Assembly: GCF_902459465.1 (NCBI RefSeq)
Contig: NC_047069.1
Coordinates: forward strand, 17,236,001 to 17,300,000
DNA: 64,000 bases
Direction of reading: 5' to 3'
Source of the DNA: Asterias rubens
Taxonomy: Eukaryota
The notes beneath the pieces are model-generated. The model saw nothing but the letters and a program-made list of their open reading frames with translations, ran no database searches and was not told the origin of the DNA. A program made the position numbers and the translations under genes. Shown one piece after another: positions 4,895 through 56,558 of this stretch (within the stretch, counting starts at the first letter, position 1; each line of letters starts with the position of its first letter).

Positions 4895-5039
4895 GTAAGT
4901 GTACTTTTTCTATTAACTTCATTACACAGGGATGTGATTTCCGTAGTTTTAAAACGGGATTCTGTTTTTTGTTTTCCTCAAAAAAAGAAATTCCTTTGAA
5001 AGATAAAATTCTAAAAGAAACGGAGATACATGTACCTAT

Positions 5040-5228
5040 TTAAGGCAGTGGACACTATTGGTAAATACTCAAAATGATTATTATCATAAAACCTTACTTG
5101 GTAGCGAGTAATGGGGAGAGGTTGATAGTATAAAACATTGTGAGAAACAGCTCCCTCTGAAGTGGAGTAGTTTTCGTGAAAGAAGTAATTTTCCACGAAT
5201 TTGATTTCGAGACCTCAGATTTAGAATT
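5040..5228. mobile_element. Truncated Kolobok-like family A MITE (left half)
   Basis: TTAAGGCAGTGGACACTATTGG start; homologous to the 1157-1510 copy. Confidence 0.75.
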
Positions 5229-6595
5229 CCAGTTGGGCTGAAAACACGGGCAAAAATTTGATGCACGGCTTGGGTGAAGCCAGGCTGTATAATAATTTAA
5301 GTGAAAATTACTGAACTTCTTTTATTTTATTTTTTTTTTGAACAGTTTAAACAGCAGTGAGTAAAATTAGATTTGGTTTTACCAGATTTCCTTCTTCTTT
5401 TTGAATCAAAATTTCAACGACGCAACCATAAAACAATCACTCGAAGTTGCCTCGAAAACGCTGACCACATTGCGACCACACAAAACACAACGCACAAACC
5501 ACCACACATTACACAACGCACGTGCAAATTACACAACGCAAGCGAGACACGCAGACTTCGTTTTAACAGTCAGTCGTCGTCATCGACCGTCATCAGCAGG
5601 CAGCATGAACTCCATGCACACGTGGTATGATGATAGAGGCGACTTCACACGCGTTTTCGTTCAGATTATTTTAGGTACCAATCTCATCTCCACGATCCTA
5701 CAAACCATCGCGCTCTGGATTTTTCTACTATGACGTCAGTATCGGTAACTAAGTGACACGCGGGGCAGTGCACCTTTTACCGCATACATTCTGCAGTTGC
5801 TTTGTAGATTGGTTTTGCTGTAGGGGGGATAGACCTCCCAAATTTATTTTTCAATGGAACTACTTAAATGGCACTGTCTTCCGTAACTGTTTGTTCTTTA
5901 TTCTCTGCAGACTGTTTACAAATTGCCTTTGACCCAGTTTCAACAAACAACCTATAAGACTTAAACGTTATGAAACCAAAACATATACATGTACTAAGGA
6001 AAATATTAATTACCATGATCAGTCAGTTTAAATTAAGCAAACAATTATGGTACATGTAAATCACTCTTGGCATTTTGATTGGTTGCAAATACTTGTGTGA
6101 ATCATTATTTTACATTAATTAATTGATTTGTTTAAATTAAATACAAAAACTATTATCAGCTTCTTGACCTTAGGCCTATAGTTCTGAAATCGAATGGACA
6201 AGAATGGATAGAAAATTAACATTAGTAAATGATAACTCTTAATTTCTTCAATACCTCTTCATTTTTTTTTTTAGTCTTTAAGCAAAAATGTGTATCAAGA
6301 GTAACACATGCCAACAAATATTTTGTTGACAGCAACCTTGTACTGCATTATTTGATCGCTTTTGAATCATTTCAGGCTAAATGGGTCCAAGCGCAGCTCC
6401 ATGGTCCAAGTAACTGCTTTGAACTGGCCTATTGACCCAGACACATTTTATAGAGTTTAATAATGTATAGTGGACGTCGATCACCTTTACAATATCTGTG
6501 CTCTAATTTTCGAGTTGAAAACAAAACAAAAATTAAATCAAAATAGTTTACTTGTAACAGAAATAGGTACCAGAAATGCTTCCAGGGCCCTTAAG

Positions 6596-6640
6596 AGGGT
6601 GGGGGGGGGGGGGGGGGGGGGTTGGGGGGGGGGGGGGGGG
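6596..6640. repeat. Poly-G tract
   Basis: ~40 nt nearly pure G. Confidence 0.95.
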
Positions 6641-6776
6641 TGAGACAGACTTGGCGCTGCGCGCTCGTGTTGTGTGCTACGCACACGTTTCTATTTTTTT
6701 GTAGTGATTTTAGGTTGCACTCCCACTTTTTCAGTTTGCACTCCCACTTTCCAAATTCCTGGCTAAGACACTGATT

Positions 6777-6972
6777 CCAGGTCTCAAAATCAAGCATCTG
6801 AAAGCACACAACTTCATATGACAAGAGTATTTTTTCTTTTCATTATTGTCTCGCAACTTCGACGACCAATCGAGCTCAAGTTTTCACAGGTTTGTTATTT
6901 TATGCACATGTTGAGATACACCAAGTGAGAAGACTGGTCTTGACAATTACTAATAGTGTCCAGGGTCTTTAA
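6777..6972. mobile_element. Truncated Kolobok-like family A MITE (right half)
   Basis: Ends AATAGTGTCCAGGGTCTTTAA. Confidence 0.75.
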
Positions 6973-7550
6973 CCATTTAATACTGCCCAGGACTGCAGAG
7001 TGAGGCTTTAAAAACTAATGATAAATGTTAATAATTGGGCTTCATCCTTTCAAAATTTCTAGCTCGCTTTGCGCTCAGAGTTTTGTTTCTTTTCTCAACA
7101 GCCTATCAAATCCCTGAATATGTCAGAATGCGTCAGAGGTTTTATGAGCTTTAATAGTCAAAAAATATTTTTGTGATTAAGATTTTAGATTTCCCAATAG
7201 AAAATTGGGGAAATTATAATTTTCTAGTTAGAGACTTAACCTCACATTAAAATGGTGTAAAATGGTGTAAAATGCAATTTTGTCTGCCGTCATGTGTAGT
7301 TTTTTTTTATTTTACCAAAAACGTTTGATCAGATAACACATCACATAAATTAAATATATGGTCTGTACATTTAATGTACTGGGGAAATGTCAGTTCATAT
7401 CGATACCAAACAACTATAAATTTGAGCTTATGACTGGCATAGATATTCATTTTTTGAATAATACAGACATATGTGTTTTTGCAGTTTGCTGTAAATAAAA
7501 AAAACATTAAACAAAATAATAAAATCTTTTTTCTTCTTTTTGTAATTCAG

Positions 7551-9047
7551 AAATTGGGATTAACCAAGATAAAACGAGAGTCCACCAAGAATATTTTGAC
7601 GTTCCAACCTCAAGCCACTGATGGCCAAGCGCTATACGATGGACAGACTGATGAGACAGAACAAGGAGGAGGTTACACCATCATACGGAGTTCATCCCAG
7701 AGACTTCATCCCAGATTGATTGACGATGCGGGCTACACCTACACCATGAAGTCAAAAGGCAGTGAAAAAACACAGTGGAGATGTTCCGTACGAAACAAGA
7801 CCACATACTGCCGGGCGACAGTCATACAGCAAGGTAAAAACTTCAAGAAGGGGGCATTTGTGCATATTCACCCGGGCAATCCAGGACGTCATATGGTAGA
7901 GAAGATTATTGCTCAAGTTAAGACCAATGCCAAGCTGAAACCATTTCAGCCGGCAAGCAATATCGTAAATGAAGTACTCACTGCAAATGTTGGCAACCGA
8001 GAACTCCCTGGCATGCCGCATCCTACTAATCTTGCTCGTGCTGCCAATCGCATGAGGCAAAGAGTTCAAGGAAAAGGTCTTGACTTCCAAGATGGCTTAG
8101 TCCCAGAGGACTTTGTGAAGAGAGTTGTCAACCGCGGGAAGAAATGCCATTTTCTACTGGCCACCAATAACCAGTTACAAATTCTCTCCCACATGACACA
8201 GTGGTACATAGATGTAAACACAAAGATCGTGAACTCACCTTTTAAGTTGCTGTTGTCCGTGCATGGCTTTGTGAAGAAAAATCACCAAGCCAAAGTTGTG
8301 CCATTGTTCTTTGCGCTAATGTCTGGCAAAAAGCGAAAGGACTTCACAACTGTGTTTAATGCGTTGACAGAGTTAATTCCAGATGGTATCCGTGTGACAG
8401 AGTGCATGCTTGACTATGATACCAATTTGTGGAGGGGCCTTAATGACGCCATCCCAAATCTAGAATGTGTTGGTAGCGCCTACCATTGGATCCAGACCAT
8501 TTGGGGTAACATTAAAGCCTTTGGGCTTCATCTGAGTTACCTAGAAGATCCCAAGGTGTTTAAGCTGATGAGGAAACTCATGGCCCTACCATTCATCCCA
8601 GCTGAACTCGTACCAGAGATGCTCACAAAGCTACAGCAGAAGGCCACCACAGGGTTAGTGCATCAACTCCTGAACTACGTTGAGGCAACGTGGGTTGAAG
8701 GTGATAAGTGCCTGTGGTCACCATCAGCATGGAGTGTGTACATGCAGCCGTATCGAACATGCAACGACCTTCACAACTGGCATGACCGTCTGAGCAAAAT
8801 AGGCAAGAAAGGACGTCTTCCGCTGAGTGCCTTGGTGCTACAGTTGTATGGTGAAGCTAAGGTAGCATTGCAGGTTATGATCATATACGATGGGGTCCAG
8901 AAGAGGCCTCAGGAGGAATCTAACAAGGCTGTACAGAATAAAACCTCAAGATATTGGGACGATTATCAGCAACAAAGGAAGTCATTAAAACATCTCCTGA
9001 AAGCTTGTGCTGCCACTGTGGTTGACGAAGGTTATGTTGAAAACTAA
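7551..9047 (+). CDS. FLYWCH-MULE-derived gene 1, coding exon 2 (FLYWCH 2 plus MULE transposase-like domain); joined protein ~660 aa
   Basis: Acceptor TTTGTAATTCAG at 7550, phase 0, in frame with exon 4409-4894. MULE-like motifs WYIDVNT, LDYD, GSAYHWIQ, RTCNDLHNWH; ORF intact. Confidence 0.88.
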   Translation, partial: KLGLTKIKRESTKNILTFQPQATDGQALYDGQTDETEQGGGYTIIRSSSQRLHPRLIDDAGYTYTMKSKGSEKTQWRCSVRNKTTYCRATVIQQGKNFKKGAFVHIHPGNPGRHMVEKIIAQVKTNAKLKPFQPASNIVNEVLTANVGNRELPGMPHPTNLARAANRMRQRVQGKGLDFQDGLVPEDFVKRVVNRGKKCHFLLATNNQLQILSHMTQWYIDVNTKIVNSPFKLLLSVHGFVKKNHQAKVVPLFFALMSGKKRKDFTTVFNALTELIPDGIRVTECMLDYDTNLWRGLNDAIPNLECVGSAYHWIQTIWGNIKAFGLHLSYLEDPKVFKLMRKLMALPFIPAELVPEMLTKLQQKATTGLVHQLLNYVEATWVEGDKCLWSPSAWSVYMQPYRTCNDLHNWHDRLSKIGKKGRLPLSALVLQLYGEAKVALQVMIIYDGVQKRPQEESNKAVQNKTSRYWDDYQQQRKSLKHLLKACAATVVDEGYVEN

Positions 9048-39091: not shown

Positions 39092-41058
39092 TCAGTCTCG
39101 TCAAACTGTTCTGGATCTGGATATTTGATTCACAACTCTCTTAGAGCCAAACGAGAAGAGGGAAGAACATGGACATTTAAGTTTTAGATGTGGGAGAAAA
39201 ACCAACGAGAATTGCTCCAGAGAAAACCCAAGGAGGTACTCGGTTGTGGGACAAAGATTTGCGTCCGGTGTTGGGGGGTTTGTGCTACAACAACGTTTTT
39301 TAATTAAATAAATGAATACTGGAAGTAATATATACATATAATTATGTAAAATGATTCACACAAATATCGCTCGAAATTATCGTTTGGTTTTCCCTTTTCC
39401 TTTGTGAGCTAACTCTCTATATATTATTGGTAAAATTTGTATGAACGATGTAATCTCCTTATTTTGTATTTTATTTTATGAAAAGGAAAAAAGTCGTTTA
39501 GCGAAAACAAGCTTGCGAGTGCAGGTAATATTTGGCATCGTGAGGAAATATGGCGTTATTGTCCTACTATAGGCGGCGTCAAAATGTGAAATGACCTTTG
39601 TAGAGTTGTCTGTGTATTCGGTGAACTTTTCAAGAGTAAACTATTCGTTCTGTATTGTGTATGTATGGTCCTGCTGCCACAGTCTGAAAACCGAATGACT
39701 TGTTTTTGTGCAGGATGCTTTGCAGACCGGTCATATAAAACAAGCGGGGTGAACCTGACCCCGAAACCGGGATGCACTTGCACCCGAATCTGGCTCAATT
39801 TAACACCCAAAAATAGCTGCATATTTCAACCACAAACCCTATAATTTGTAAAGGCCTAAACCAGACAAATTTAAGCCGGCCTCAGGTCGACCTTGCGTCA
39901 ACAAAAAACCGTCGGCGACTGACTCTTCAGGATTACACTGCTCCTGAGCTAACACCATCGGGAACTTTTAAGACAATCTGAAACAGTCGCCGCTCGAAAA
40001 AATTAACAGTCGCAAGAGTAGAACAATTTCAACTTGAACGACGTGATCCCGACAGTCGGGAACCAATCGCAGGCGCATGATTTCTCAGTTGTTGTGACCT
40101 GAGCATTTGTCTGCGCGTTGCCGACGGTTTGTTGCGGGCGCAAGAAAAACGTAGGTCGACCCGTTGAGGCCGACTTCCACTGTGTTTTGTAGTAATTATA
40201 TTAATAATTTAAAAGTTGACAAATATAACACTCAAATGATACAGTTCCGCTTCACCCGATAAAACCTCAGTCGGAATTATCATAGCCTCCTGAAATAGTG
40301 AGCGCCATGGCAACCGGTCTATCAATAATTGGTTGTCTGAACCCTTTCAAATGTACCATTGGATCAAAAATAGTTCCAAAATAATGGAGTTAAAACATCT
40401 ATTCCAAAAGAGTGACTGTGACGAGTGAAAATAAAATTTAAAGCCCGCCAAACAAACTTCACGCGCAGGCATCCACTTTGTTACTCGATTTGCTAATTCA
40501 ATTGCAACACAGCGTGACACAGAAACTCAGGAGTGTGTTTGGGACACCATGCAGAAAGCGCAAAGTATAGATGGCCCCGCGGCCCGCCCGTACATGCTGA
40601 ACAGCCGTTGCTCTAGACCAATAGGAATGAAGAAACTGTCTTATAAGAACAGGTGAAGCTCGCGTGTCACGCCCATGTTTAAACACTTTTTACTGGTCAT
40701 TCAAACAAAGGTTTATACACACCCACGTGACTGGCTCTCCATCAATAGGAATAGCGAAACTGTCTGAGGTATTTATGAATGAATACTACTTTGTACCAGG
40801 TTTGAGTGCGGCTATCGCACTTTTCGCCCAGATAATAATGTTTATAAAGAACACGCTGCTAAATAATTGTAGTGTAAACAAAAAGCTTTATAATTATGCT
40901 GTTTTAAGATATCTCAAATAAAAGACAAAGACTAACTTAAAACCCGGCGGGTCTCAACAAAGCAATACATGTCAATTTATCCTTGCGGTATAAAGACAGG
41001 AAGAAGCCCAGTATACCCCCCCCCCCCCACAGTTGCAAAAGTTTTTGGTTTAAGCGCT

Positions 41059-41174
41059 TGGTGGCGCTATACTACAAATGACAGTCAACAAACAACAAGG
41101 AATTCAGAATGGGATGGACGACTATAGCTGCAGCAGCAAGGAAGTGAAGTTCGACTGTGAATCTTACTTTTTTA
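41059..41174 (+). promoter_or_regulatory. Promoter/non-coding exon 1 of FLYWCH-MULE gene 2, homologous to the LARGE promoter
   Basis: 18-nt TGGTGGCGCTATACTACA shared with 47695-47712; both followed by AAACAACAA and a GTGAGT donor (41175 and 47822). Confidence 0.55.
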
Positions 41175-41346
41175 GTGAGTTTATTTTGTGATTTTTAGTA
41201 GTGCAAAGGGAGACTGAAGTGATAGTGATAGATAGATTTATATTAGTATTTTTTGGTCTGTCCATTGTTGTTTATTTCTGAGAAAAATCGTCTCCACTGC
41301 TGGGGGCACTGTACTTCACAAGTTCTAGAAACTTTGATATAATTAA

Positions 41347-42261
41347 TATAAGGCTCCCCGTGAGCCTTATTATAGGGGTCTAATATTTTGGGCCTCCTTA
41401 ACGCTATACGTTTTTGAAATCGGCGTTGATAGATGAAAGTTTTACGACCGTTAGCCATTAATATAACTGAAGTTTCCTTTTAATTTTTACTACACAACCA
41501 AAACTTATCCAACACACTCGATATACATTCATGTAGCTAGGTCAGGTTGGACTCCTCCTTTGCAGTGGCACTGACCATGGAGGTACTGACTGACGTCCTA
41601 CCAGGGCTAACATTCATGATGCTTGTGTATACTATTTCTTTTTTGTAGAGTTAAATTAAAAAACATCTTCAAAAAATGAAATTTTCTGCTCGGTACTCAC
41701 TGTTGTTTTTTGGAGCATCGCACGTTTTTTGACTTCTCAATATGCTCAATGCTTTATTTTTTGACGATGTTTTTAAACTTCACTCAACAAATAGGAAATG
41801 CAAGCATTATGAATGTATATTGAGTATGTGGGGAAATATAGAAAGGTTTGCGGTAACACCATGTAATAACAATCTCTAAATGAGTTGGGGTGGTTCTGAA
41901 AAGAACCGTTGGATTAACTCTAATCCAACTGAGTTAATCCAACGGTTCTTTTCAGAACCGTTGGATTAACTCTAATCCAACTGAGTTAATCCAACGGTTC
42001 TTTTCAGAACCACCCCAACTCATTTAGAGATTGTTATTACATGGTGTTACCGCAAACCTTTCTATATCTTACTTCCACCATGCAAAGTTTCAAATCCTAC
42101 TTATGTGGGGAAAGTTTTGGTAGTGTAGTACAAAAGAAACTTCAGTTATTGCTGGCTAACGTTCGTAAAACTTTCACCTATCAACGCTGATTTGAAAAGC
42201 ATATAGCGTTAAGGAGGCCCAAAATATTAGACCCCTATAAGGGTCACGGGGGAGCCTTATA
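41347..42261. mobile_element. TIR DNA element (~110-bp TIRs) with a nested palindromic insertion
   Basis: 41347-41458 is the inverted match of 42150-42261. Confidence 0.8.
41837..42101. mobile_element. Penelope-like palindromic insertion with 12-bp target-site duplication
   Basis: TATGTGGGGAAA at 41825-41836 and 42102-42113; arms GGTTTGCGGTAACACCATG shared with 57421-57640 and 61162-61450. Confidence 0.65.
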
Positions 42262-42382
42262 GGTTCTAGAAGTACCCCCCCCCAAAAAAAAAAAAGGCCA
42301 AGCCCAGCTGATTTTCCATTCAGCGTTATTCTTTTCTGAATTGTAATACATGTTCCTTGATCAATGTTTCCTTATTCAACAG

Positions 42383-42623
42383 ATAACTAAACGGATGTTG
42401 AGACATCTGCAAGTTTAGTGACTGGAACACCCTCGGCACGCCCACATGGGATCTGTGAGGTTCAGCACTGCTCAAGACTGCCAGAGAAAGAAAAACCTCC
42501 ATATTTTTTAAAGATTCATAGCCCAGAATACAATGAGGCAATAGACTGGGTCCCCAGGAGTGCTTGGTGTTGCACTCAAAACACTGCCGGTGTCTGAGAA
42601 TGAAATCCTGACAAGTCAGGATG
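42383..42623 (+). other. 5' exon of FLYWCH-MULE gene 2 ending in ATG|GT; degenerate copy of LARGE first coding exon
   Basis: Aligns with 50705-51000 at acceptor, body and donor (AGTCAGGATG|GTAAGTCT vs AGTCAAGATG|GTAAGTCT). Confidence 0.7.
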
Positions 42624-42992
42624 GTAAGTCTGTCAAAGGTTAAAGTTCAATAAGTTGTGCTGACTGTAGACATAACTAGCAGTTTGGTAAACTAGTGGAA
42701 AGCTTGGGTAAACTAAGGGTAAACTAAGCTCTTTGCTTTATATACATAGCACTAGTTGTCAATGAAGTTTTGTCTGTGTGTGCATATTTACAGGTTTGAT
42801 GACTTTCCTATTTAAGTCTGATTTCCATTTTTTTTTCCCATTGAGAAGGCGGAAAAAATAATGTTTAGCCTCAATTGCCTGAAAAGATTGCTATTACAAA
42901 ACACCCCGAAAATAAATGCAAGTAATTGCGTGATTATGTTATAAATTACTTCTTTGCTTTTGTTGTTGTATCTTTTGTAATGAATTAAACAG

Positions 42993-44495
42993 GAGTCCAC
43001 CACCGATGTTGTGATGTTCCAACCTCAAGCCACTGATGGCCAAGTGCTATACGATGGACAGACTGATGAGACAGAACAAGGAGGCGGTTACACCATCATA
43101 CGGAGTTCATCTCAGAGACTTCATCCCAGATTGATTGACAATGCCGGTGGGTACACCTATACCTTGAAGTCAAAGAGCAAAAGGAGTACATTATGGAGGT
43201 GTTCTGTCCGGAACAAGACCACGTACTGCCGGGCTACAGTCACACAGCGTGATAAACACTTCAAGAAAGGGCCATTTGAACACATACATCCAGGCATTCC
43301 AGGACGTTATGTTGTGGAGAAAGTTATCACTCAAGTTAAGATGAAGGCCAAGAAAGAACCTTTGTCGGCAAACAAGATTGTAGATGAAGTACGCAATGCA
43401 AATGTAGGCAACCAGGAACTCCCTCATAGCATGTTGCCTCCTTCTTATATTGACCATGCCGCCACACATATGAGGAAGCGAATTAAAGAAAGAGATTTTA
43501 ACTTTCAAAATGGCTCAGTCCCAGAGAACTTTGTCACGAAAGTTGTCAATCGCGGGAAGAAAAGTCATTTTCTACTGGCGACCAATAACCAGTTACAACT
43601 TCTCTCTCATATGACACATTGGTACATAGATGTAAGCACAAAGATTGTGGAGTCACCCTTCAAGCTGTTGCTGTCTGTCCACGGCTTTGTGAATAAAAAT
43701 CACCAAGCCAAAGTTGTGCCTTTGCTATTTGCTCTTATGTCTGGCAAACGGAGAAAGGACTTTACAATTGTGTTTAATGCGTTAAAAGAGGCAGTTCCCA
43801 ATGGCATTTGTGTGACAGAGTGCATGCTTGAGTATGATACCAACTTGTGGAGGGGCCTTAATGACGCCATCCCAAATCTAGAATGTGTTGGTAGCGCCTA
43901 CCATTGGATCCAGACTATTTGGGGTAACATTAAAGCCTTTGGGCTTCATCTGAGTTACCTAGAAGATCCCAAGGTGTTTAAGCTGATGAGGAAACTCATG
44001 GCCCTACCATTCATCCCAGCTGAACTCGTACCAGAGATGCTCACAAAGCTACAGCAGAAGGCCACCACAGGGTTAGTGCATCAACTCCTGAACTACGTTG
44101 AGGCAACGTGGGTTGAAGGTGATAAGTGCCTGTGGTCACCATCAGCATGGAGTGTGTACATGCAGCCGTATCGAACAAGCAACGACCTTCACAACTGGCA
44201 TGACCGTCTGAGCAAAATAGGCAAGAAAGGACGACTTCCGCTAAACTCCTTGGTGCAAAAGTTGTACGGTGAAGCTAAAACGGTGACCTTACAGGTTATG
44301 ATCATATACGATGGAAAGCTGAGTAGACCTCAGGAGGAATCTAACAAGGCTGTACAGAATAAAGCCTCAAGACATTGGGACGATTATCAGCAAGAGAAGA
44401 AGTCACTAAAACATCTCTTGAACGCCTGTGCTACTGATCTGGTCCAGGTTGAGTCTGCATACCTACCACCTAAGGACTTAAGTGAAATTCTCTGA
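42993..44495 (+). CDS. FLYWCH-MULE-derived gene 2 main exon (~500 aa)
   Basis: AAACAG acceptor, phase 0, giving ESTTDVVMFQP (cf. ESTKNILTFQP in gene 1); intact ORF; same degenerate MULE motifs. Start is either ATG 42621-42623 or ATG 43014. Confidence 0.88.
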   Translation, partial: ESTTDVVMFQPQATDGQVLYDGQTDETEQGGGYTIIRSSSQRLHPRLIDNAGGYTYTLKSKSKRSTLWRCSVRNKTTYCRATVTQRDKHFKKGPFEHIHPGIPGRYVVEKVITQVKMKAKKEPLSANKIVDEVRNANVGNQELPHSMLPPSYIDHAATHMRKRIKERDFNFQNGSVPENFVTKVVNRGKKSHFLLATNNQLQLLSHMTHWYIDVSTKIVESPFKLLLSVHGFVNKNHQAKVVPLLFALMSGKRRKDFTIVFNALKEAVPNGICVTECMLEYDTNLWRGLNDAIPNLECVGSAYHWIQTIWGNIKAFGLHLSYLEDPKVFKLMRKLMALPFIPAELVPEMLTKLQQKATTGLVHQLLNYVEATWVEGDKCLWSPSAWSVYMQPYRTSNDLHNWHDRLSKIGKKGRLPLNSLVQKLYGEAKTVTLQVMIIYDGKLSRPQEESNKAVQNKASRHWDDYQQEKKSLKHLLNACATDLVQVESAYLPPKDLSEIL

Positions 44496-45076
44496 TTGTT
44501 AAGTTTCAACCCCCCCCCCCCCTCGAAAAAAAAATTAAGATGTTTGTTTTGTTTTGTTGTGACAATGAGAATATTTTAAAGCACGTGTCATGGATTTATT
44601 GTATTGTCACGCACCATGAATCACAAAACCTTTACCATGAGACACAGCCTCCAATTGGGCCCGTGTTGGGACCAAGGCTTGAACCTCAGTCCACTCTGAC
44701 CAGCCTCAATTCAAGTCAAAAATATGCAATTTGGCGGAAACCTTGCTATGCCATGTAATTCTCTTCTTGCTACAGCTGAAGGGCAACTGCCTGGAAGTGG
44801 GGATAGTGCAATAAAATCCTCTGGATTATGTGACCTCTGGAATGTTGTGATGTCTCTCTACAAACTGAATTATCCATTTGTTTCAAACTCATGTGCCCTT
44901 ACATGTACTTTTCAGGAAATTGAGTGTGCTTCTTGGCCCCTATTTGTGACTGAATTGTTTCAAACCCTTAGGCCTTTATCAGTAAATTATTTACCTTTCA
45001 AAGTTAGTGGCCTGACATTTTTACCTAAGCAGCTTCCGGGCAGGCTAGAAAGACTCTGCTAATTTGTTGAAACATC

Positions 45077-45317
45077 AGGGCCCAATTTCATGGGTCTGCT
45101 TACTGCCGAATTCTGCGCTTACGATCACGATTCCCCGCTTTATTGCAAGCGCCGAATTTCTGCGCTAGCCTTGTAAGCGTAGAATGCCTAGTAACGCGGA
45201 GAAGCCAAAATTCGCAGGTAACCCGTGAAATAGGCTTGCCGTAAGCACAGAATTCCCTGCTTCCGTAAGCACCGATTTTGTGCTTACGGTAAGCAGAGCC
45301 ACGAAACTGGGCCCAGG
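45077..45317. mobile_element. Harbinger-like MITE (GGGCCCAATTTCAT TIR family); relatives near 38530, 54420-54590, 55065-55260, 59140-59540
   Basis: Inverted ends visible. Confidence 0.7.
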
Positions 45318-47694
45318 TATTTTTTGCATTTATGCCATAACACCATTTTGGTTGGTGAGTAGTTTGCAACAGATAATTATCTTTTCTCAAAATAAGATAT
45401 AAGATACAATATTTTGGCTGCTATGGCATGGAATTTTATGATAAGAGCATGTTTTTTTTGCAAAGGGCTACTTCAAATAGAAAACATCAAAGCTGTGATG
45501 TTGGAGCACTTTGAGAAGCCATTCGGGTGTGAAAATCACATAATGAAAACCGACAATTATTATTTTGTATTATTGTACAAACTTAGGGGCACCAAGGCCA
45601 GGGCACCAAGGCCAGGGCAACAGGCCAGGGCAACATACAATGTAGGCAATGTTATCCAAGGCCAGGGCAACATACAACGTAGGCAATGTTATCCAAGGCC
45701 TGGCCTCGATTTAAAACATGTATAGGAGGATCGGAGAGCTAGTGCATGAGGAAGTAAGATGGGTTTAAAGGAACTGGACAAATTTGGTATTTTTCAAAGA
45801 CCTGTGTTCTCATTGGGTGTCCCAACATATGCATAAAATAACAATCTGTGTGAACATGTTTTCAAAGGGAGCCGTTTCTCAACATGTTTTATACTATCAA
45901 AAGCTCTTCAATGCTCGTTACCAAGTAAGTTTTTATGCTAAAGATTATTTGGAGTAATTACCAATACTAGCCAGTGCCTCTTAAAATGTGCCTTTTTAAA
46001 ATGTGGTCTTTGTATTGTATTCATTACCAAAAGATTTGATTAAATGGCTTTTGAGTTACAGTGGTTAAGTTCACTTTTTATTAATCCTAGCGTCAGTTTG
46101 TCTTATGGTCATCTTCCACTACTTGTTCTCTGCTCTTGATCTTCGAGTGTTCCATTACACTAGTCATGCACTTTGGTTTACAATTTTCTCACTATCATTG
46201 TCTGTGTTGAATATTGGCAGAATACACAATAAAAACAACAGTTCATCAATTAATCTTATGAGGTTCAAAAAGTGAGGACTTTATTTACTGAAAGTTTTAT
46301 TTATATTTATTTATTTTAAATCTTTCTCTAAATTAAACCAACTGATTGGATCCTCCAAAACCAGCACTGTGACACACAGACGTGAAGATATTGGGCAGAT
46401 AATGAAGACATGTTAGTTCTTGGTTGGTTGAAACAATAAGTGGGTGAATCTATGGTGAAAGTTTGCAGGGACTGAAAACCCAATTAGGCCTCTGACTTGT
46501 TTAGTGACAAGCGGAGATAACTAGCCTGTCCTTTCAGCATGAGTCCGGAAAGCTCGTCCATATTTCATAACAAAAGTAGGGTCTACGGCATGTCTGGCCA
46601 GCCGGACCATGGAGAGAAGTTTGATGGGTACTCGTCGTGTGTGTTTTCTCCATTGGCAATTGGACCACTTTTAAGGGAAGAAATTGGGGAAGAGATGAGG
46701 GAAGAAATTGACAATCCACCTGCAAGTAGTAGGTCCACGGAGGCGAATGCAGGTCGACAGAAACCACTAAACCAACCATCCATTCACTTGTCTCTATTAT
46801 CTTTTTTTGGTCATTTTCCAGTGGGCCTAAATACAAAAAAGGAAGGAGTGCTACTGCTAACTATTTTTATACAAAGAAAATTATTCGTTCAATCACCAAA
46901 AGTAGATAGGCAAAGAATACAATGGAAATTAAACATCAAATTCTGTCGTGACATTTCTTGGGTAGAGTTTTTTCACATGCAGTTTGAAGCAAAAAGGACA
47001 AGTGATTTTTAGTGTGTGCTTTATTGAATCCCAAAATAGTACAAAGTTACAGTTCAAAAGAGGAAAATGTTTTGCCGGAGAAAGTTTGGGATAAAAGCAA
47101 TAATTGGGCGATAATAAGCTCTCTCCCCCTTTTTTTTTTTGCCCCCAATTTTTTTTTGTATTGCCCTGACGTCTCACCGTCTGATGGGTCCCCGAAACCC
47201 GGAGATATAGTTATATTGACACAAAGCTTCCTCATTGCCCATCTTGACATTTTGGCCTGTTTTTCCTCATAACTTTATGTATTTTGGGGGAAAAAAGGGT
47301 CCTCAATCATAATTCGCTATAAGATAATATTTCCCACAAGCTTAGCAGATTTCCCTGGTCCTTGCTCTGTGATACTTGCGAGGCTAGAAAAGTCAGCCGA
47401 CGCTTGGCCGACAGCCTAGTGAGATGTAGACTTGACTCAAGTCACAATCCCGTGCCATCCCCGTTAAAATACTGTTTTGTGGTGCTGCATTCCAAAACCT
47501 GTTCCGCATGCTGCTGGAGCACATTTTGACGGCGAGCGCGCACTGTGTATGCTACGTGTTGTTTTATAGTGTTTTTAAGTCGGAGAATGGGACTTGAACA
47601 AGTCTAAGTGAGATGCCACTGCCTGTCTAGTCTCTCGCTCGTCGGCACCACGGCCAGCACTGTTTTAAGCATTAATTTCCCTTTTAAAGTCTCG

Positions 47695-47821
47695 TGGTGG
47701 CGCTATACTACATTCATGGATGGTTAAAAAACAACAAAAAGAGGATGGCCAATTTGCTGTAGTTCAAAACGAGCCTTTGTCACACATGTCACAAGGATTG
47801 ATTTGACCACGAATGATAAAT
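47695..47821 (+). promoter_or_regulatory. Putative LARGE promoter/non-coding exon 1
   Basis: CpG-containing region upstream of the LARGE coding exons; GTGAGT donor at 47822. Confidence 0.5.
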
Positions 47822-48004
47822 GTGAGTTTGTTTATATTCTAATTATATTTTAATGAATATGTTGATTAACTAAGGCATTGTTATTATGTGAATGAATGTG
47901 GTTTGTACGAGTACACTGACTTTTAATTTTATCTGTTGGTTTTTCGTGATCATGATCATGATGATGTTGACTGTTGTTGACTGGCTGTAGTACTAGTAGG
48001 AATA

Positions 48005-48747
48005 CCGGACACTTCGGCACCTTGCAAACTCGGCACCAGCAAACTCGGCACCCACAAACTCGGCACCCAGTTGGAAATTGAAATAAATCCCGATCCTCAT
48101 CGTGTGTATCGGCGGGTTCGACGTCGTACCGACGACGATACATACCTATTATAATAATTAATATGTATTTTCACTGTCGTGGTGAGGTTGCCCTTTTCAA
48201 AGATCTGTATCAAAATAATTAATATTTATTTTGTGTAAACTTTAAAAGACGTTTTGGAGTCGAAAATACGTAATTTCGATGTCCAAGTAATTTCGATGTT
48301 CAAGTATTTTTTGGGAACATTTATACGAAACTTTGATCCAATAAAACAATAATTCAAAATAAAGAGTACGTGTGTAAATACAGACTGTCGTGCACTGTGT
48401 TTTATTACAAGAACCCACTTTAAGATTTCACGATTCCACGAAACACCGGGTGAGCACGCTGAAGTGTCGCTGAATTATTTCAACGAAATTCAAACCAGTT
48501 TTTATGGTGTTAATACTACTCTTCGGTTGGTATTTGCTGTTGGTGCCGAGTTTGGTTAAGTGGACAAAGATAGGCCGGTGCCGAGTTTGTTTGGTGCCGA
48601 GTTTGTTGGACCAAAACAGGCTGGTGCCGAGTTTGTTTGGTGCCGACATTCTTGGTGCCGAGTGGGTGCCGAGTTTGCGAGGTGCCGAGTTTGCGAAGTG
48701 CCGAGTTTGCTGGTGCCGAGTTTGCAAAGTGCCGAAGTGTCACCCGG
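48005..48747. mobile_element. MITE with TIR GACACTTCGGCAC and subterminal AACTCGGCACC arrays
   Basis: Left ACTCGGCACC units mirror right GGTGCCGAGT units. Confidence 0.85.
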
Positions 48748-49321
48748 CTGTAGTGTAGTGTACAATGTATGTGCACTGCATTGCACTGCTGGTGGGGTGG
48801 GGTGAAGGGGGGGGAGTCTACTCATTGAAACAGAGGACTTTGAGAAAGTGAGGGCGTCCTCAGCTTGCTATACGATGCCTTCCCATGGCTGGGTGACATC
48901 AAGACTCTTGCTTGACAAGAGAAGAAAACGACCCCAACATTCAAAAAACCTTTTGTCAGTTTGTAGTTGCGATAATGTAACCCTCCTCTCCTTCGCTCAA
49001 ACTACTCAGTTTGTTGTGGGCCTGTTTTTATTTCAACACAATATCATTATCAAAAAGGACAATTCTCGATCAAAACTGTTTGTTAAGTGTAAAAGAAATT
49101 CCTTGATTATATTCAGGTGGAGTTTACAAGAGTAAATACACTAAGCAGGGACATAAATAATAACAAAAGAGGACAATTTGGGTCCAAGGTTCAGGGAAGG
49201 TCCTCAGTTGGAAAACGTGTACAAAACCATTGGGAGCTGTTGCAAAAAGTAATAAACAAAATTAAAGTGGGACAACGGGGGTCCACGGTTGTTGCAGGCT
49301 TTTAAAATACAAGCTTGTAGA

Positions 49322-50475
49322 ATCTTCTTCTTCTTCCTTATAAAGTGCAGCCTTCAAATGGTTGAAGATGTACGCACTGCGTGTGAGCGCATGTGTTGCC
49401 TTAGGCAACAGGAATTTGTGTCAGGTGCAGATAGAATTATGTACAGCCGGGGGTCCCTTAACGGCAGTTTGAAAGCGTCAAGGGACGGGTACGCCGCAGG
49501 ATCAACTGGGAGGTTGTTCCAGTCCCGGATGGTGCGTGGGAAGAAGGAGCTAGCGTAGACTGAAGAGCTGGTATGTGGGATTGTGAAACGAGAGCCATGA
49601 CCTCTTGTTGATGCGGTTGAGTGTGTGTGAAGAGTGTTCCAAGGGATGTCGACCAAGTTGAATCTTATTTTGTACATCATTTGAAGGCGGCTTTGGTAAC
49701 GACGTTCCTGAAGAGAGGGCCATTCGAGGTGATCTAGCATGGCAGTAACACTGCTGGTTCTTCTATAATCTCCCATGACGAATCAAGCTTAGCTTCGTTG
49801 GACTTGCTCTAGCTTCTTGATGTTACGTTGCGTGTGGGGATCCCATGAAGTTGTTGCGTATTCGACTGCTGGTCGAATAAAGGTGGTGTAGACAGCTTCT
49901 TTGATTTTCTGGCTGCTGTGGCTCAGATTGCGGGAGAAGAAGGCCTTGGTGCTAGTGGCTCTTTTTGAGATGTTGTCAACATGGGTGTTGAAGCTTAGCT
50001 TCGGATCAAGGTGAACTCCCAGGTATTTAGCGGAGTTGACAGCCTCCAAGGTATGCCCATGGATGGTGTAAGAGGCAGGGACAATGATCCGCTTGTTGGT
50101 GACTCTGACTACTTGGCACTGTCAGCCATTTAATTTCCCAGTCTTGGAGGGCGTTGATATCTTTCTGGAGGCTGATGGCATCGTTGATTGAAGAGATGTG
50201 TCTGTAAACAACAGTATCGTCTCCAAACAGGCTACAAGTAGTTGTTGAGCTTGAGAGGCAGTCAGGCAGGTCATTGATGTACACTAAGAAGAGTAGAGGG
50301 CCGAGTACACTGCCTTGAGGGACTCCAGATGTGACGCTGGTTTTGCTGCTCTTCTGGCCATCGACGAGAACACATTGACTGCGGGAGTGGAGGAAGTCTG
50401 TAATCCATTCCAGTGTCTTACCTCTTACACCGTAATGATGGATTTTCTTCAGCAGGTGCCGATGAGAATCTATGC
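49322..50475 (-). mobile_element. 5'-truncated, inactivated LINE (CR1/L2-group) RT fragment with (GAA)n tail
   Basis: GVPQGSVLGPLLFLVYINDLP, LFGDD, KYLGV, SSFFPRTIRDWNNLP across frameshifts and stops. Confidence 0.92.
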
Positions 50476-50900
50476 TCGTGTGTGCGTGTGTACTCTTTGG
50501 CTGCAATCTATTTCTGAAAATGGACATTAATTAAAAAATAAAAAATGAAGTGGCATGTATGATGTAGTTTGATTAGACCCCCCCACCCCCATCTCCCCCC
50601 CCACCCCCATCCCCCCCAAAAAGTGTTGGGATGTGAAACTCCGAAAACTATGTTTCTGGATTATGTGTAATAATTTCTAAATGAACTGTTTCCTCATCCC
50701 ACAGATAATGTAACTGCGATCATGAGACAGCAGCAAATTAAGTAATTGGTACGCTCACAAAAGCACAAGATCTTTTGGGGGGTCGACGCTGCTCAAGATT
50801 GTCACTCAGAGAAACTTCCACGTATGAAAGACTTGACATGATGCAATAGATACCACTGAGTCCACCAGTGTCCACACATGAGCCCTACTAATCCAGGAGT

Positions 50901-51000
50901 ATGAATGTGGTCAAAGTAAATAAAAAACCACTGGGGGTAGCACTCGTAATACTCATCGTGACGGTGGTGGGAATAAAGTACTTATTCAACAGTCAAGATG
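50901..51000 (+). CDS. LARGE: LARGE coding exon 1 (type II membrane anchor)
   Basis: MNVVKVNKKPLGVALVILIVTVVGIKYLFNSQD-G; G|GTAAGT donor, phase 1. Confidence 0.82.
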
Positions 51001-51479
51001 GTAAGTCTATACAGGGCTAGGGTTGTTTGTGAACATCAATAAGGCATACAGTACATACTTTGCACTTTACGCTTAAGTCTTGAAGCATCAAATAAGTTTT
51101 TCTCTGGTGTAGATGTATAAAGGGGCACGAGGAAAACGTGTATTTGTATTGAAACCTGGCAAAAGGGCACCACAGCAGAACCATGAGGACACCACTCTAA
51201 TTGCAGTGGGTGCCATGGGGGTAATCCCAGGCCTGGGCTAAGTTTCCTTAGCTTTAAAAGGGAACCAATTAAAGCTGTTTATCCCATTTAATCTTTCTCT
51301 AGGGATCCCAATCCAAACTGTTCACCCGGGGGAATTTATAAACTGTGGGGCACTCTGAAATATTGTAAAACGAGGTCCTCAGAAATTAATTTTTACTTGG
51401 TGTTTATCTTTGGTCTAAAGTCATACTGTTCAATTGAGGACATTCTAAATGATCTTCAAACGATTTTTATGAATCTGAA

Positions 51480-51778: not shown

Positions 51779-53774
51779 TGTTTTGTTGTTTCGATTCTGA
51801 CTATGAGTACATTATAGCAGGCCTGGGATTACACAGAGGCCTTGGAGGCCGTGGCCTGCGGTGCCCCTGGTCTTGACCTTGGTGCCCCTTTAAAAGTGTC
51901 CCATGATAGACTTTCGGATTGTACATGTTGTACAGTGGCAAGTGCCCTTTGCAAAATCAAAATGGCCTTGCCCTTTCAAAGATGAAATTTCAGGCCTGAT
52001 AATAGGTTGGCTGAGTGGTTTCTTTCCCCGCTTTCACCTCTGTTGACCCAAGTTGGAATCTTACCTCAGACAGAGCCTTGCAAGTTGCATTTGGCCTACA
52101 TGTAGGTCTTAGTCCCTACCTTATTACATGGTGTTTCCTCGATCAAAGTTTTCCATCTAAAAAAAATTAAATAAATTATGGACACGTCTAATTCATCCTG
52201 TTATTTTTTGTGCAAAAATGTGCTGTTAGATGAAAACAAAATATACAAAACAAATTGAATTACTAAATTAACTGCAGGTTATGTATATAAATTGTCCGCA
52301 ATTTTAACCTGGCAAAATAAGATTGCATTGAGTTGGCAAAATATTGTGTCGTTTCAGTAGCCATTGATACAATTTGTGCAGCATTTTTATGTAGATGAAG
52401 TCATCAGTCTGACTTTTATATCTGGTTTCATTGGCAGTAATGTAAGTGACTCAGACTATTTCTGTTCCCCTGGACAGGATGCCAGTAATTGCAGGTTGCT
52501 CCCCCAGCTCATGCCTATACCCATTCGTAGTCCTGGGTGCAGAGAAGCAATCATGAAAAAGGAAGCAATGGTGCGCCTGACCAAATGTCGGGATTCAAAC
52601 CCACATTCTGTAATCTACCAAACTTGAATCTACTGCCCCAGTGTGCTCGGCCACTTTAATACACTCATGTTCAACGGGAAATCGCTCACTGCATCAGAAT
52701 AGTTACTTGTACTAAGAATTCATACATTTGTATTGTAGACAGTTACATCCATTACAGCCTGTGAATAACCTCTGGGGTTTTTCTTGAGAGCTAACATGCC
52801 CATGAATTTAAATTGATAGGTCTCCATATGATGCGAAGAAAATTACAATACATTAGGCCTATACCTACCATGCAAGTGGTACTACCTTAATGATTCTGCC
52901 TCATCAAACATGTACAGTCACACATTTTTTGTAAAGCCATTATACACTTTCGGTAAACAGTATTGTCCAAGTCCCACATTTCGTGTATCACAACTTATAT
53001 AAAATAACAAACCTATGAAAATTTAAGCTCAATCGATCATCGGAGTCGGGAGAAAATAACGGGAAAACCCACCCTTGTTTCCGCACGTTTCGCCATGTCA
53101 TGACATGTGTTTACAATAAATCCGTAATTCTTGCTATCAAGAATTGATATTGTTTTAATGTTTTCTCAAAAAGTAAAGCATTTCATGAAACAATATTTCA
53201 AGAGAAGTCTTTCACCATTACCTTCTGTAAACCCTGTAAATTATTTGTAAATCTGTGAATTAAAAAAAAAAAATTCTGTACCAAAAGTGTATAATGGCTT
53301 TAAGGGCTTGCTGCCAGAATGTCATGTTTTAAGCATCATGGTCAACGTGAGCTATGTGCACATTATCACTTTAGTTACAAATTACTGAATAATGTTTGGG
53401 GTGATCTATTTATCTAATACGTGTTTCAGATTTGTTATGTTTGCGAAACAGTAGGCAAAGTATCAAGTACATTGTATGAGAGCAATATATGTGACCATTT
53501 TACTGCATAATTTTAAAGGAACTGAACACTATTGGTAATTACTCAAAATAATTTTTAGCATAAAAAACTTACTGGGTAAAGCGCAATGGAAAGCTGTTGA
53601 TAGTACAGTGTATAATGTATGTATAACAAATTTTGAGAAATGGCTCCCTCTAAATTATGTAGTTTTTGAGACATGAGTATTTTTTCACTCAACTTATAAA
53701 CGACTCTTTGAAGCTTTTTTATTATGCATAGAACTGAATGCACACTCAACTAGAAAATCTGTTTGTGCAATCAG

Positions 53775-53886
53775 GGTACCATACAGAGGGAGAGACGGTG
53801 TATGATTTTAAGAAGCGAGAAACCATCATGGCCGACAAGCTCCTGGAGATTGAACGAGAGAACCAGATGCTCAAAAAACAACTCAG
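53775..53886 (+). CDS. LARGE: LARGE exon, coiled-coil stem
   Basis: KLLEIERENQMLKKQL; phase 1-2; alternative in-frame acceptor possible at 53754. Confidence 0.8.
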
Positions 53887-56004
53887 GTATTTGGAATATT
53901 TGAACATTAACCCTCTCACCATTTGACTTTTTTAATTTCATTCAAATGTGTTTATGATTTTTCGAAGCTGTCAGCCTAAAATTTGATATCATGCTGTCAT
54001 GTGGTGAATTCATCTATAGTACACACAGTCTGAGTAGCTAGTGTTCGACCTCAACGGTGGTCCGCTGGCCAATACCAGTGGAAACCGTGAAGGACCAGCT
54101 TGCAGACCAGTAAAAAAAATGGCTGACAGTAAAAAATATCGGCAGCGGTTCTACAGAACTATGACTATTTATTTACTATTAAGGTTCAGGGTAGACTACC
54201 CTTGCACAGTCTGACCATTAAATGTCATCCATTGTGATTCTGAAGGATACACTATGCCAGCCTGTGATATAATATAGTGAATGCATAGTACACAGTCAAC
54301 CCTCCTACTGTCCTACCATTCACTCTCATCCATTTTTTTTTTTTTTTTTTACTGATAAACGATGCCAGCGTCCATCTTCAGTTAGTACATTACACATCTT
54401 TGCCACAAACACAATAGCAGCCGATTTCACAATACGCTAGGATTAACCCTATCTCGAGTATAGGACGAGTACCTCATCCTAACTTAGGATTAATTTTAGG
54501 GTTTACATGTTACAGTGCAAGGCTGGGACTCGTCCTAAGTCCTAAGATTAATCCTAAGTTAGGAAGAGTTTGGTGAAATCGACGGCTGTGCAGTTAAATG
54601 GTGTCAAATTTTGTTCAACTCACTGGTACATGGTACCAAGTGACGTAGGGTAAAGAAAAACAATTTTGTTTCTAGATATTCAACTAAATTTTTATGAGCC
54701 ACTTTTACAATCAATCCTCTTATAAAAACTCCTGTCCTAAGAACATGAAGAATGGTCGAGGAGGATACACTTTTGATAATGGTTGCACCTTTAATGGAGA
54801 TTCAACATTAGGAGACATGTATGCTCAATGCTTACACAAGCTGGCATCAGGGTGTCAGGGAAAATAAAATGACACCATAGGGGAATTCTAAAGACCTGGG
54901 TGCTCCACATGGAATTTTGTGTACAAAGTCTATGGGGAAACTGTTAATTTCAGGGACAGAGGAAAGCACATAAAAATGCTCCACAAGGATGCATTTTTGA
55001 GAATGGTTGCACTTTTAATTGAGTTTTGACAATGCATGCTCATTGTTTACACTTGGCTGCCATCATGGCCCAATTTCATAAAGCTTGTAAGCACAAAAAC
55101 ATGCTAAAGCACTGGAAAATCTTGCTTAGCAAAAACAGGTTACCAGCCAATATTCAATACAGTTAGCACTGTTGCGAATGGTGCCCCACTCAATGTCTGC
55201 TTCGCATAGAAATGTGTCAAGCAGTATTTCCTGCTAAACAGCTTCATGAAATTGGAACCAGGAGGGAAGATTGTCCTAGTTATTGCAAACAGCTGGCCAG
55301 ACTTAATCTGAATACGGGGTCACATTGGGAATGTCTGCAATGATTGTTATAAATAGTCACAACAAGGTTATTGAATCTACATGTTGATGTTCACACACTG
55401 ATAACGCAGGATAATATCTATCTCTGAGTTACATGTTTGTTGTTCACATTGACCCAATTCACCGAAATAAAAACTTGGTTGCTCCATTTTGGGATTCACA
55501 TTTTCTCTATGGCTGTGAAGTGCACATTTTAAATAACAATAAATATTTAACCACAAGTGAAACTGACTGAGTAGACTGTCCATAACTTGGGTTGAACAAA
55601 GGCAATTTTACTAGAGCGGGATTTGAGCCTCCGGTTGAATGTGCTGGTGCTGTCTAATCCTTATTTGGCGATCTCCCTGGTTTGTCAATACTGTACCTTT
55701 GTTCTGGGTGTGGTGCCAGTCGGAAGCCATACATGTACAGCAGTGTAGCCAGGGATCACACCTAGATGTACTGTAAAACCTTGGGAGCGGCAGCCAGGGG
55801 ATAACCTTAAAGGCAGTGGACACTATTGGTAATTACTCAAAATAATTATTAGCATAAAACCTTTCTTGGTGACAAGTAATGGAGAGAGGTTGATGGTATA
55901 AAACATTGTGAGAAACGGCTCCCTCTGAAGTGCCATAGTTTTTGAGAAAGAAGTAATTTTCCACGAATTTGATTTTAAAAATATTTCTTCCCGCCACTTT
56001 CTAG

Positions 56005-56330
56005 CATATCACAAAGTCAACTCCAGCAGACCTACGAGACCTACCAAAACATTCATGTAGAAACTGGGAATGGTACCAGCTTCAACCACTCCACAGAGGG
56101 CAACAAGACCATATCAATAAGCTGTCCCAAGCAGCAACCCGCTGTCCCTAAATGTGAAGTCATCCACGTGGCTATCGTGTGTGCCGGTCACAACGCCAGT
56201 CGTGAGGTCGTCACGCTCATCAAATCAATTCTTTTCTATCGGAAGAATCCTCTACACTTTCATTTCCTGTCGGACGAGGTTGCCCAAGTCATTCTGGAGA
56301 CTTTGCTCAGAACATGGGATGTGCCGGGAG
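56005..56330 (+). CDS. LARGE: LARGE exon, start of GT8 xylosyltransferase domain
   Basis: [39 protein letters not shown]; phase 2-1. Confidence 0.96.
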
Positions 56331-56558
56331 GTAAGTTGACAATGACAGGTCTTTTTCTTCAGCTGCGCCGCACATCTGGAACTCTCTGCCACTTAATCTT
56401 AGATCTTGTCTTTGTACCACAACATTCAAATCTCGTCTCAAAACTTATCTTATGTCACAGGTTTTCAGGGACTAATTTTGTTGCGTCTGTTTTTCTTTGT
56501 TTTTTTTGTGTTTTTTTGTTTTGTTTTTACTAGGGTGTTTAAGTGCGCATTTCAAGTC

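Follow-up and report, generated by a model that had tools for sequence, protein, structure and literature searches.

A spliced gene upstream of LARGE

The window analyzed here comprises 64,000 nucleotides (nt) of the starfish Asterias rubens (NCBI RefSeq assembly GCF_902459465.1, contig NC_047069.1, positions 17,236,001 to 17,300,000 of the forward strand), and all positions below are counted from its first letter. It holds two genes for FLYWCH-MULE proteins, herein gene 1 and gene 2, the second of which stands upstream of the glycosyltransferase gene LARGE. A first-pass annotation, made from the sequence alone, had described gene 2 as a new gene born by capture of a promoter and exon from LARGE. 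The window is laid out as follows:

4409-9047, plus strand: gene 1 (FLYWCH-FLYWCH-MULE, 660 amino acids)
~12-39 kb, plus strand: receptor tyrosine kinase gene
~41.1-45.1 kb, plus strand: gene 2, the candidate chimeric gene
from ~47.7 kb, plus strand: LARGE, ~3 kb downstream of gene 2

The best explanation of gene 2, and one that we regard as very probable, is a chimeric gene formed from partial DNA copies of LARGE and of gene 1. Its transcript was followed by placing Logan contigs from four public runs on positions 39500 through 45400, and its exons are

41115-41174, plus strand: gene 2 exon 1, non-coding (the contig-covered part only), with donor GTGAGT at 41175
42383-42623, plus strand: gene 2 exon 2, a decayed copy of LARGE exon 2; a 5′ leader with upstream ATGs (uATGs), its last three bases being the ATG at 42621-42623
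42993-44495, plus strand: gene 2 exon 3, the coding part including the stop codon; FLYWCH- and MULE-derived

Both splices that had been predicted, 41174>42383 and 42623>42993, occur in transcript contigs, in two runs each, and the proposal so passes the refuting tests that the first-pass annotation had set. The first (GT..AG) comes from runs X8 and X9, whose contigs extend 60 and 57 nt into exon 1; the second, in runs X1 and X8, was placed at 42622>42992 and can be shifted by one base to 42623>42993 (GT..AG). One 384-nt contig of X8 spans both joints (41115-41174, 42383-42623, and 42993-43075). Contigs cover the open reading frame (ORF) of gene 2 and extend to ~45105 through 45124, and, the repeat apart, hardly any contig depth is seen within the introns. 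The contig 5′ ends at 41115 and 41118 fit a start site shortly downstream of an 18-nt motif described below, although contigs cannot prove a start.

A nested, high-copy foldback element resembling a miniature inverted-repeat transposable element fills most of gene 2 intron 1 (41347-42261). It has inverted arms at 41370-41463 and 42147-42240 and a central palindrome at 41836-42067; its contig depth is in the thousands, and relatives lie at 18.2 and 57.4-57.7 kb.

The two parents of gene 2

A sequence search of the Protein Data Bank matched the LARGE exon at 56168-56335 to the human LARGE1 structures 7zvj and 7ui6 (E 2e-20). Homologs of this exon are mostly unnamed fragments; those with names (from snail, bichirs, and sea cucumber) are called LARGE1-like or LARGE2. 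Single LARGE exons gave zero Pfam matches. The LARGE coding sequence of Asterias amurensis specifies 738 amino acids with Glyco_transf_8 (GT8) and Glyco_transf_49 (GT49) domains, and it opens MNVVKVNKK..., the same peptide as window 50901-50999. Judged by sequence, the identity of LARGE is secure. Its 5′ end is organized as

47713-47822, plus strand: putative non-coding LARGE exon 1, assigned by positional homology with gene 2 exon 1; donor GTGAGT at 47823
50705-51000, plus strand: LARGE exon 2, with 5′ untranslated region (UTR), start codon at 50901 and signal-anchor; ends GAT G|, phase 1
53775-53886, plus strand: putative LARGE exon 3, from direct reading, in the frame of ORF 53738-53926

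At the junction 51000|53775, 33 codons counted from 50901 are followed by one G; since GG at 53775 completes a Gly codon, the junction is phase 1. The region of exon 1 is 95 to 98% identical to A. amurensis, and in transcriptome-sized runs only 2/11 sampled words of exon 1 were found. LARGE intron 1 also contains inverted arrays of a short GGTGCCGAGTTTG-like unit (48008-48074 and 48593-48756, with ~500 nt between them) and, on the minus strand at 49400-50530, a reverse-transcriptase fragment (RVT_1, E 1e-11).

Gene 2 exon 2 had been proposed to align with LARGE exon 2, and the alignment holds. Comparison by blastn of 40.9-43.0 kb with 47.4-51.3 kb yielded three collinear blocks:

41049-41098 with 47684-47737: 78% identity
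42333-42493 with 50653-50814: 66%, E 6e-11
42563-42647 with 50931-51024: 67%

Over the exon-2 region the score is 38, whereas dinucleotide shuffles average 11.1 and do not exceed 18 (z 18). Taken separately, the two halves of the exon give local scores of 38 and 23, which were reached by 0/1000 dinucleotide shuffles each (maxima 16 and 18). Aligned globally, the exon pair has 75% identity over 216 aligned columns, with 105 gap columns. The homology runs past both ends of the exon: it takes in the 50 nt of intron that precede the acceptor CAG|ATAA, that acceptor itself, the donor, and ~25 nt of intron beyond it. All the anchors listed by the first-pass annotation (CAG|ATAA, TGAGACA, GCTCAAGA, GCAATAGA, and CCAGGAGT) are present and collinear, and the donors differ, as it said, by one nt (AGTCAGGATG|GTAAGTCT and AGTCAAGATG|GTAAGTCT). 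Genome-wide searches, here and below in the 418-Mb A. rubens genome, revealed no further copies of either exon-2 stretch at the sensitivity of the tool; being single-copy, the stretches are not a dispersed repeat.

The gene 2 copy of the exon was also said to keep a dead relic of the anchor frame behind a stop, which we could read directly: in the frame of LARGE it runs TAG...PGVLGVALKTLPVSENEILTSQDG, with the TAG in frame. The LARGE start ATG (50901) and ~10 codons fall in an alignment gap, and the hydrophobic anchor PLGVALVILIVTVVGIKYLFNSQDG of LARGE corresponds to ...VLGVALKTLPVSENEILTSQDG in the copy. Copying from LARGE to gene 2 is indicated because the copy keeps a dead relic of the anchor frame without the ATG, while the A. 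amurensis LARGE coding sequence starts there. A contig of run X2 carries A. amurensis bases at exon-2 positions 42420, 42433, and 42443, which may be shared polymorphism or mean that the sample came from a hybrid or a different species.

The coding part of gene 2 corresponds to the last coding exon of gene 1:

7551-9047, plus strand: last coding exon of gene 1, parent of the gene 2 coding exon; starts cag|AAATTGGGA..., phase 0

Gene 2 exon 3 has 87% nt identity to gene 1 7591-9022; the matched extents are 7578-9022 in gene 1 and 42993-44443 in gene 2. Full-length copies of the FLYWCH-MULE exon number two in the genome, namely genes 1 and 2; the products of gene 1 (LOC117293997) and gene 2 share one contig. 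The gene 2 acceptor is homologous to 7578, 27 nt inside the parental exon, where AAAACGA GAG has become AAACAG|GAG (CGA to CAG), phase 0; it thus appears to have been newly made within former coding sequence. A weak match, TTTTGTAAT, extends into the parental polypyrimidine tract. Homology ends at 44443/9022, which is 25 nt short of the parental stop codon, so the C-terminal tail and 3′ UTR of gene 2 are both new. The first coding exon of the parent (4409-4999), which encodes an acidic N terminus and the first FLYWCH finger, is missing, and the predicted gene 2 product is an N-terminally truncated paralog with one FLYWCH finger instead of two. Pfam assigns gene 2 a FLYWCH domain (24.6 bits, cutoff 23.6) and MULE at 17.7 bits, under the cutoff; its homologs at E 1e-88 or lower carry PF10551. 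Gene 2 does not have the features of a processed retrogene, the copy being part of one parental exon, without the upstream coding exon and with a match that runs into the polypyrimidine tract.

Gene 1 adjoins TBCK, and both the Patiria miniata ortholog (723 amino acids) and the A. amurensis ortholog of gene 1 stand head to head with TBCK; a comparison stretch (L008) is collinear with the start of the window. This shared neighborhood identifies gene 1 as the parent and the ancestral locus. We read gene 1 as a domesticated transposase of Mutator type, old, fixed in its synteny, and degenerate in its catalytic residues. The domains of the two genes are transposase-derived, copy number is low, the one inverted repeat (17 nt, around the gene 2 ORF) has no target-site duplication, and the position of gene 1 beside TBCK is conserved, as is that of gene 2 upstream of LARGE in A. 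amurensis. Catalytic positions were read from an alignment with transposon-like homologs, the DDE and CxxH positions being those that we presume from the Mutator D..D34E signature. The first catalytic D is kept, whereas gene 2 has E in place of the second. At the third acidic position both Asterias genes have A where Patiria and Acanthaster have E, and every starfish compared shows S for the C of CxxH. Since catalytic loss predates the duplication, gene duplication is favored over transposition.

A candidate promoter element, age, and selection

The first-pass annotation had further stated that an 18-nt motif and a GTGAGT donor upstream of exon 2 match the promoter exon of LARGE. The two copies of the motif are

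41059-41076, plus strand: 18-nt motif TGGTGGCGCTATACTACA, upstream of gene 2 exon 1; candidate promoter element
47695-47712, plus strand: 18-nt motif TGGTGGCGCTATACTACA, upstream of the putative first exon of LARGE; exact in A. amurensis

These are the two sites of the exact 18-mer in the genome; they have the same orientation, and each lies 98 to 110 nt upstream of a GTGAGTTT donor. Motif and donor position are therefore shared as claimed, but no alignable promoter surrounds the motif. Its 14-nt core, GGTGGCGCTATACT, occurs at 14 loci genome-wide with unrelated flanks and usually with T before the core, against 0 for a reversed control pattern. The loci other than gene 2 and LARGE, listed as (T)GGTGGCGCTATACT, are

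C3:5101383, C3:14855067, C4:18687898, C5:3230845, C11:100295, C12:6849348
C13:12893025, C16:157103, C17:6831115, C17:14128681, C19:8324346, C20:4173111

Recurrence among unrelated flanks gives the motif the look of a stand-alone cis-element, and the core may be a binding site for a factor with a long footprint. In part it looks like the 3′ half of the CTCF core and like the ACTACA box found in ZNF143/THAP11 sites; there is no fit to the 5′ halves, and nothing is claimed from this likeness. By our own arithmetic, the chance of a second site within 10 kb, given 14 genome-wide, is ~6e-4, and that of two of 14 sites being 6.6 kb from each other, equally oriented and equivalently placed, is of the order of 1e-3 or less. 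This suggests that the motif was co-duplicated and then preserved while the remainder of exon 1 decayed. The rare 15- to 18-nt motif is flagged here as a possible promoter element in A. rubens.

The two FLYWCH-MULE genes differ by a synonymous divergence (dS) of 0.39 to 0.63 over the first 250 codons and of 0.016 over codons 300 through 400. A gene-conversion tract of ~300 nt covers 43890-44190 and 8475-8775 (nt 900 through 1200), with 99 to 100% identity in both Asterias species, and the flanking coding sequence is 76 to 80% identical. The LARGE-derived exon 2 lies at a Jukes-Cantor distance of 0.30 (global) to ~0.44 (local blocks), which is comparable in order to the dS outside the conversion tract; the two halves may thus have joined in one episode. 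Between A. rubens and A. amurensis the dS of gene 2 is 0.067; set against 0.39 to 0.63, this makes the chimera ~6 to 9 times older than the split of the two species.

Since that split gene 2 has acquired 21 synonymous and 26 nonsynonymous differences, a ratio of nonsynonymous to synonymous divergence (dN/dS) of 0.34 (binomial p 4e-4 against neutrality), and it is under purifying selection. It nevertheless evolves about twice as fast as its parent, with 36 unique amino-acid changes to 18 in gene 1 (p 0.014, outgroup P0003). Divergence of gene 2 from gene 1 and from this outgroup is strongest in the FLYWCH-MULE linker at 43380-43500 (residues ~125 through 170), where, for example, NLARAANRMRQR has become YIDHAATHMRKR.

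In A. amurensis an ortholog of gene 2 is present upstream of LARGE, and from exon 2 through intron 2 to exon 3, as well as over the 5′ region of LARGE, the two species are collinear at 86 to 96% identity. Genes 1 and 2 are 102 kb apart in A. amurensis vs. 35 kb in A. rubens. Farther upstream, past the end of collinearity taken up below, A. amurensis carries a minus-strand gene for a 2135-amino-acid HYR/kinase protein that is absent from the A. rubens window. Intron 2 of A. amurensis gene 2 has an insertion of ~385 bp (42869/42870 vs. L002:10266-10650), of a repeat family that also occurs at 45765-45987 and many times in the introns of the kinase gene (31-35 kb).

The candidate starts of translation in gene 2 are

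42395, plus strand: uATG, short upstream ORF (uORF)
42446, plus strand: uATG, short uORF
42533, plus strand: uATG, short uORF
42600, plus strand: uATG, ATG AAA TCC TGA, 3-codon uORF 42600-42611, in frame
42621, plus strand: junction ATG, with A at -3 and G at +4; 501-amino-acid ORF
43014, plus strand: ATG with G at -3 and T at +4, eight codons downstream of the junction ATG; 493-amino-acid ORF (MFQPQ...)

Once spliced, the ATG at 42621-42623 followed by GAG at 42993 opens the 501-amino-acid ORF MESTTDVVMFQ..., in frame with FLYWCH-MULE. This ORF is identical to the public protein for the locus, whose model starts at the junction ATG. The frames read as had been claimed: the LARGE donor is phase 1 (GAT G|GG), and in gene 2 the ATG|gt joins the phase-0 acceptor at 42993. 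The junction ATG occupies the same positions as the ATG within the GAT G|GT donor of LARGE. Exaptation of the start codon from an Asp-Gly junction is thereby upheld insofar as the ATG is homologous, in frame, and the start of the public model; as a start used by ribosomes it is a candidate. Given its Kozak context (A at -3, G at +4), the best of these, we take the junction ATG as the main start, a reading of the sequence toward which we lean by a little.

Origin of gene 2 and rival explanations

In the account we favor, the 5′ part of gene 2 would be the decayed 5′ end of LARGE (the motif, a short exon 1 without coding sequence, exon 2, and ~25 nt at the start of the intron that follows), which would have lost its start codon and membrane-anchor frame and would now act as a promoter plus a uORF-rich 5′ leader. 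The 3′ part would be copied from the final exon of gene 1. The mRNA joins exons 1, 2, and 3, and its long ORF would open at the GAT-G of LARGE re-read one base out of frame. The likeliest route would be a segmental duplication reaching from the last exon of gene 1 to LARGE intron 2 and followed by deletions, as in Drosophila Sdic; a later deletion would remove the second kinase gene and trim the 3′ end of the copy. The order of the genes is parent A, chimera (5′ of B plus 3′ of A), parent B, which is the order predicted for chimeras formed by tandem duplication (PMC5460883) and thus fits such a duplication from the last intron/exon of gene 1 to LARGE intron 2. Each of the two parents matches a distinct contiguous part of gene 2, one transcript spans the junction, and an intact 501-amino-acid ORF is kept by selection. 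Because the LARGE-derived part has lost its ORF, gene 2 is a promoter/UTR-recruitment chimera; that part supplies at most the initiator ATG, which falls short of a chimeric protein in the strict sense, and with no host-derived coding sequence beyond the ATG it is not a host-transposase fusion protein either. Of the birth by promoter and exon capture originally put forward, the chimeric structure, the two surviving parents, and the LARGE-derived 5′ exons stand, while the evidence for promoter capture consists of one 18-nt motif and its position. Only tentatively do we propose the fullest form of this account, which we hold to be rather doubtful as a whole: that the start codon of gene 2 was born from GAT G re-read one base out of frame, and that the 18-nt promoter element, intact while the rest of the copied exon 1 decayed past recognition, puts a truncated, faster-evolving FLYWCH-MULE paralog under LARGE-like regulation.

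A number of findings weigh against this account or parts of it. The runs are labeled RNA as a guess, and their RNA nature is deduced from the canonical GT..AG joints, the empty introns, and the single-copy state of exon 2 in the genome. Remnants of a larger duplication were not found: comparisons of 44.4-47.7 kb with 9-41 kb, of 39.0-41.06 kb with 44.4-47.7 kb, and of gene 2 intron 2 with LARGE intron 2 and the gene 1 intron revealed dispersed repeats only, so two separate small duplications or a template switch are equally compatible. Collinearity with A. amurensis ends at 42264 (vs. L002:9665, CP134955.1), the right edge of the intron-1 foldback element, and gene 2 exon 1 and its motif were not found in the 9.6 kb upstream of A. 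amurensis exon 2; this break may stem from a true rearrangement, from an intron that is long there, or from a fault in the assembly. Exon 2 diverges by ~6% between the two species, like the flanking intron and the ORF dS. Around exon 1, similarity of the flanks is not significant once the 18-mer is taken out, the score being reached by 145/1000 and 363/1000 shuffles, and the motif core is present at 12 loci besides gene 2 and LARGE. As to the start, the leader has at least four uATGs (42395, 42446, 42533, and 42600), and reinitiation at the junction ATG is disfavored because no more than 9 nt separate it from the end of the 42600 uORF. Identity to the parent is 71% in the 24 nt that precede 43014, compared with ~98% in the next 126 nt and 93% in the first 150 nt; this divergence is UTR-like and could equally mark the edge of a conversion tract.

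The last of these points bear on the rival closest to our reading, in which the chimera is the same but exons 1 and 2 are pure 5′ UTR, translation begins at ATG 43014 (493 amino acids), and the junction ATG is incidental or minor. ATG 43014 is itself new, being ACG in gene 1, the stretch between the acceptor and 43014 is far more diverged from the parent than what follows, and ribosomes reinitiating after the uORF at 42600-42611 would tend to skip the junction ATG. The N terminus also seems labile, as the A. amurensis ortholog is annotated from yet another ATG: there the stop of the 42600 uORF is a sense codon, and the protein begins seven codons earlier (MKSSKVR-MESTT..., 508 amino acids). 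Ribosomes leaking past the uATGs should, however, stop at the junction ATG, which comes first and in optimal context, and which is conserved in A. amurensis, weak evidence at 6% divergence. We rate a start at 43014 as a serious possibility, somewhat short of an even chance. That only exon 2 was copied from LARGE, gene 2 exon 1 and its promoter being unrelated and the recurrent motif shared by chance, would agree with the dissimilar flanks and with a core that stands alone at 14 loci; it is improbable in view of an 18-mer that is exact at only two places in 418 Mb, which share their orientation and are so close together, and of the GTGAGTTT donor ~100 to 110 nt beyond each motif, in an exon spliced (gene 2) or presumably spliced (LARGE) to a homologous second exon.

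A different origin for the ORF itself would be a Mutator-like transposon that landed in a dead LARGE fragment and is read through by chance, with no host function. Its architecture of FLYWCH plus MULE is indeed transposase-derived, and the ORF is bracketed by a 17-nt inverted repeat (42870-42886 and 44908-44924, 94% complementary; ~0.01 expected by our own arithmetic), which we examined as a transposon end and judged a chance occurrence, there being no target-site duplication. We consider a transposon landing very unlikely: there are just the two full genomic copies, both ends of the homology to gene 1 fall within coding sequence, the parent had itself already lost the catalytic residues, and gene 2 is spliced, expressed, and represented in A. 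amurensis by an ortholog under purifying selection. Chance or a dispersed repeat as the source of the LARGE similarity is the least credible of the explanations and was tested and rejected; the identity is only 66 to 75% with many gaps, yet no shuffle reached the score of either half of exon 2, both stretches are single-copy, and the three collinear blocks come with a homologous acceptor and donor.

Gene 2 and known routes of gene birth

The favored reading of gene 2, a chimera of LARGE and gene 1 sequence, makes it a clean example of a known gene-birth route, the formation of chimeric genes by partial duplication, and involves no new mechanism; the gene model is already in public annotation. 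Its value is as a well-resolved case outside the usual model organisms, in which a partial gene duplicate has turned into a working gene with both parents alongside. The borrowed exons are visibly decaying from coding sequence into leader, an acceptor and two candidate starts were made by point changes, and the gene is constrained yet faster-evolving than its parent. A domesticated transposase can thus itself supply the material from which further genes arise.

FLYWCH is regarded as Mutator-derived (PMC10027918). Like other domesticated FLYWCH/Mutator genes (the FLYWCH transcription factors and the plant genes FHY3/FAR1 and MUSTANG), genes 1 and 2 combine a FLYWCH and MULE core with low copy number, syntenic orthologs, and purifying selection; a literature search found no paper naming both FLYWCH and Asterias. 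Gene 2 also resembles host-transposase fusions such as SETMAR and KRABINER in that a transposase-derived ORF is spliced to exons of a host gene. Those genes fuse a host protein domain in frame, whereas the host exons of gene 2 give only a promoter, a leader, and possibly the initiator Met.

The closest parallels are found among chimeras of neighboring genes. Drosophila Sdic, a chimera of sw/Cdic and AnxB10, arose by segmental duplication over two adjacent genes that were then fused through deletions (PMC7475035). In both systems one parent supplied the promoter and 5′ exon from what had been coding or intronic sequence, the product of the other parent gained a new N terminus, and both parents survive beside the chimera. 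Unlike Sdic, gene 2 has a domesticated transposase as its coding parent and receives at most one codon from its 5′ parent; it is single-copy rather than tandemly amplified, and no remnants of intervening duplicates were found. The tandem-duplication chimeras of PMC5460883 likewise join the 5′ end of one gene (promoter and UTR) to the 3′ coding part of its neighbor. Those cases are young and polymorphic, whereas gene 2 is fixed, older than the Asterias split, and remodeled at its junction, with a new acceptor and a new C-terminal tail.

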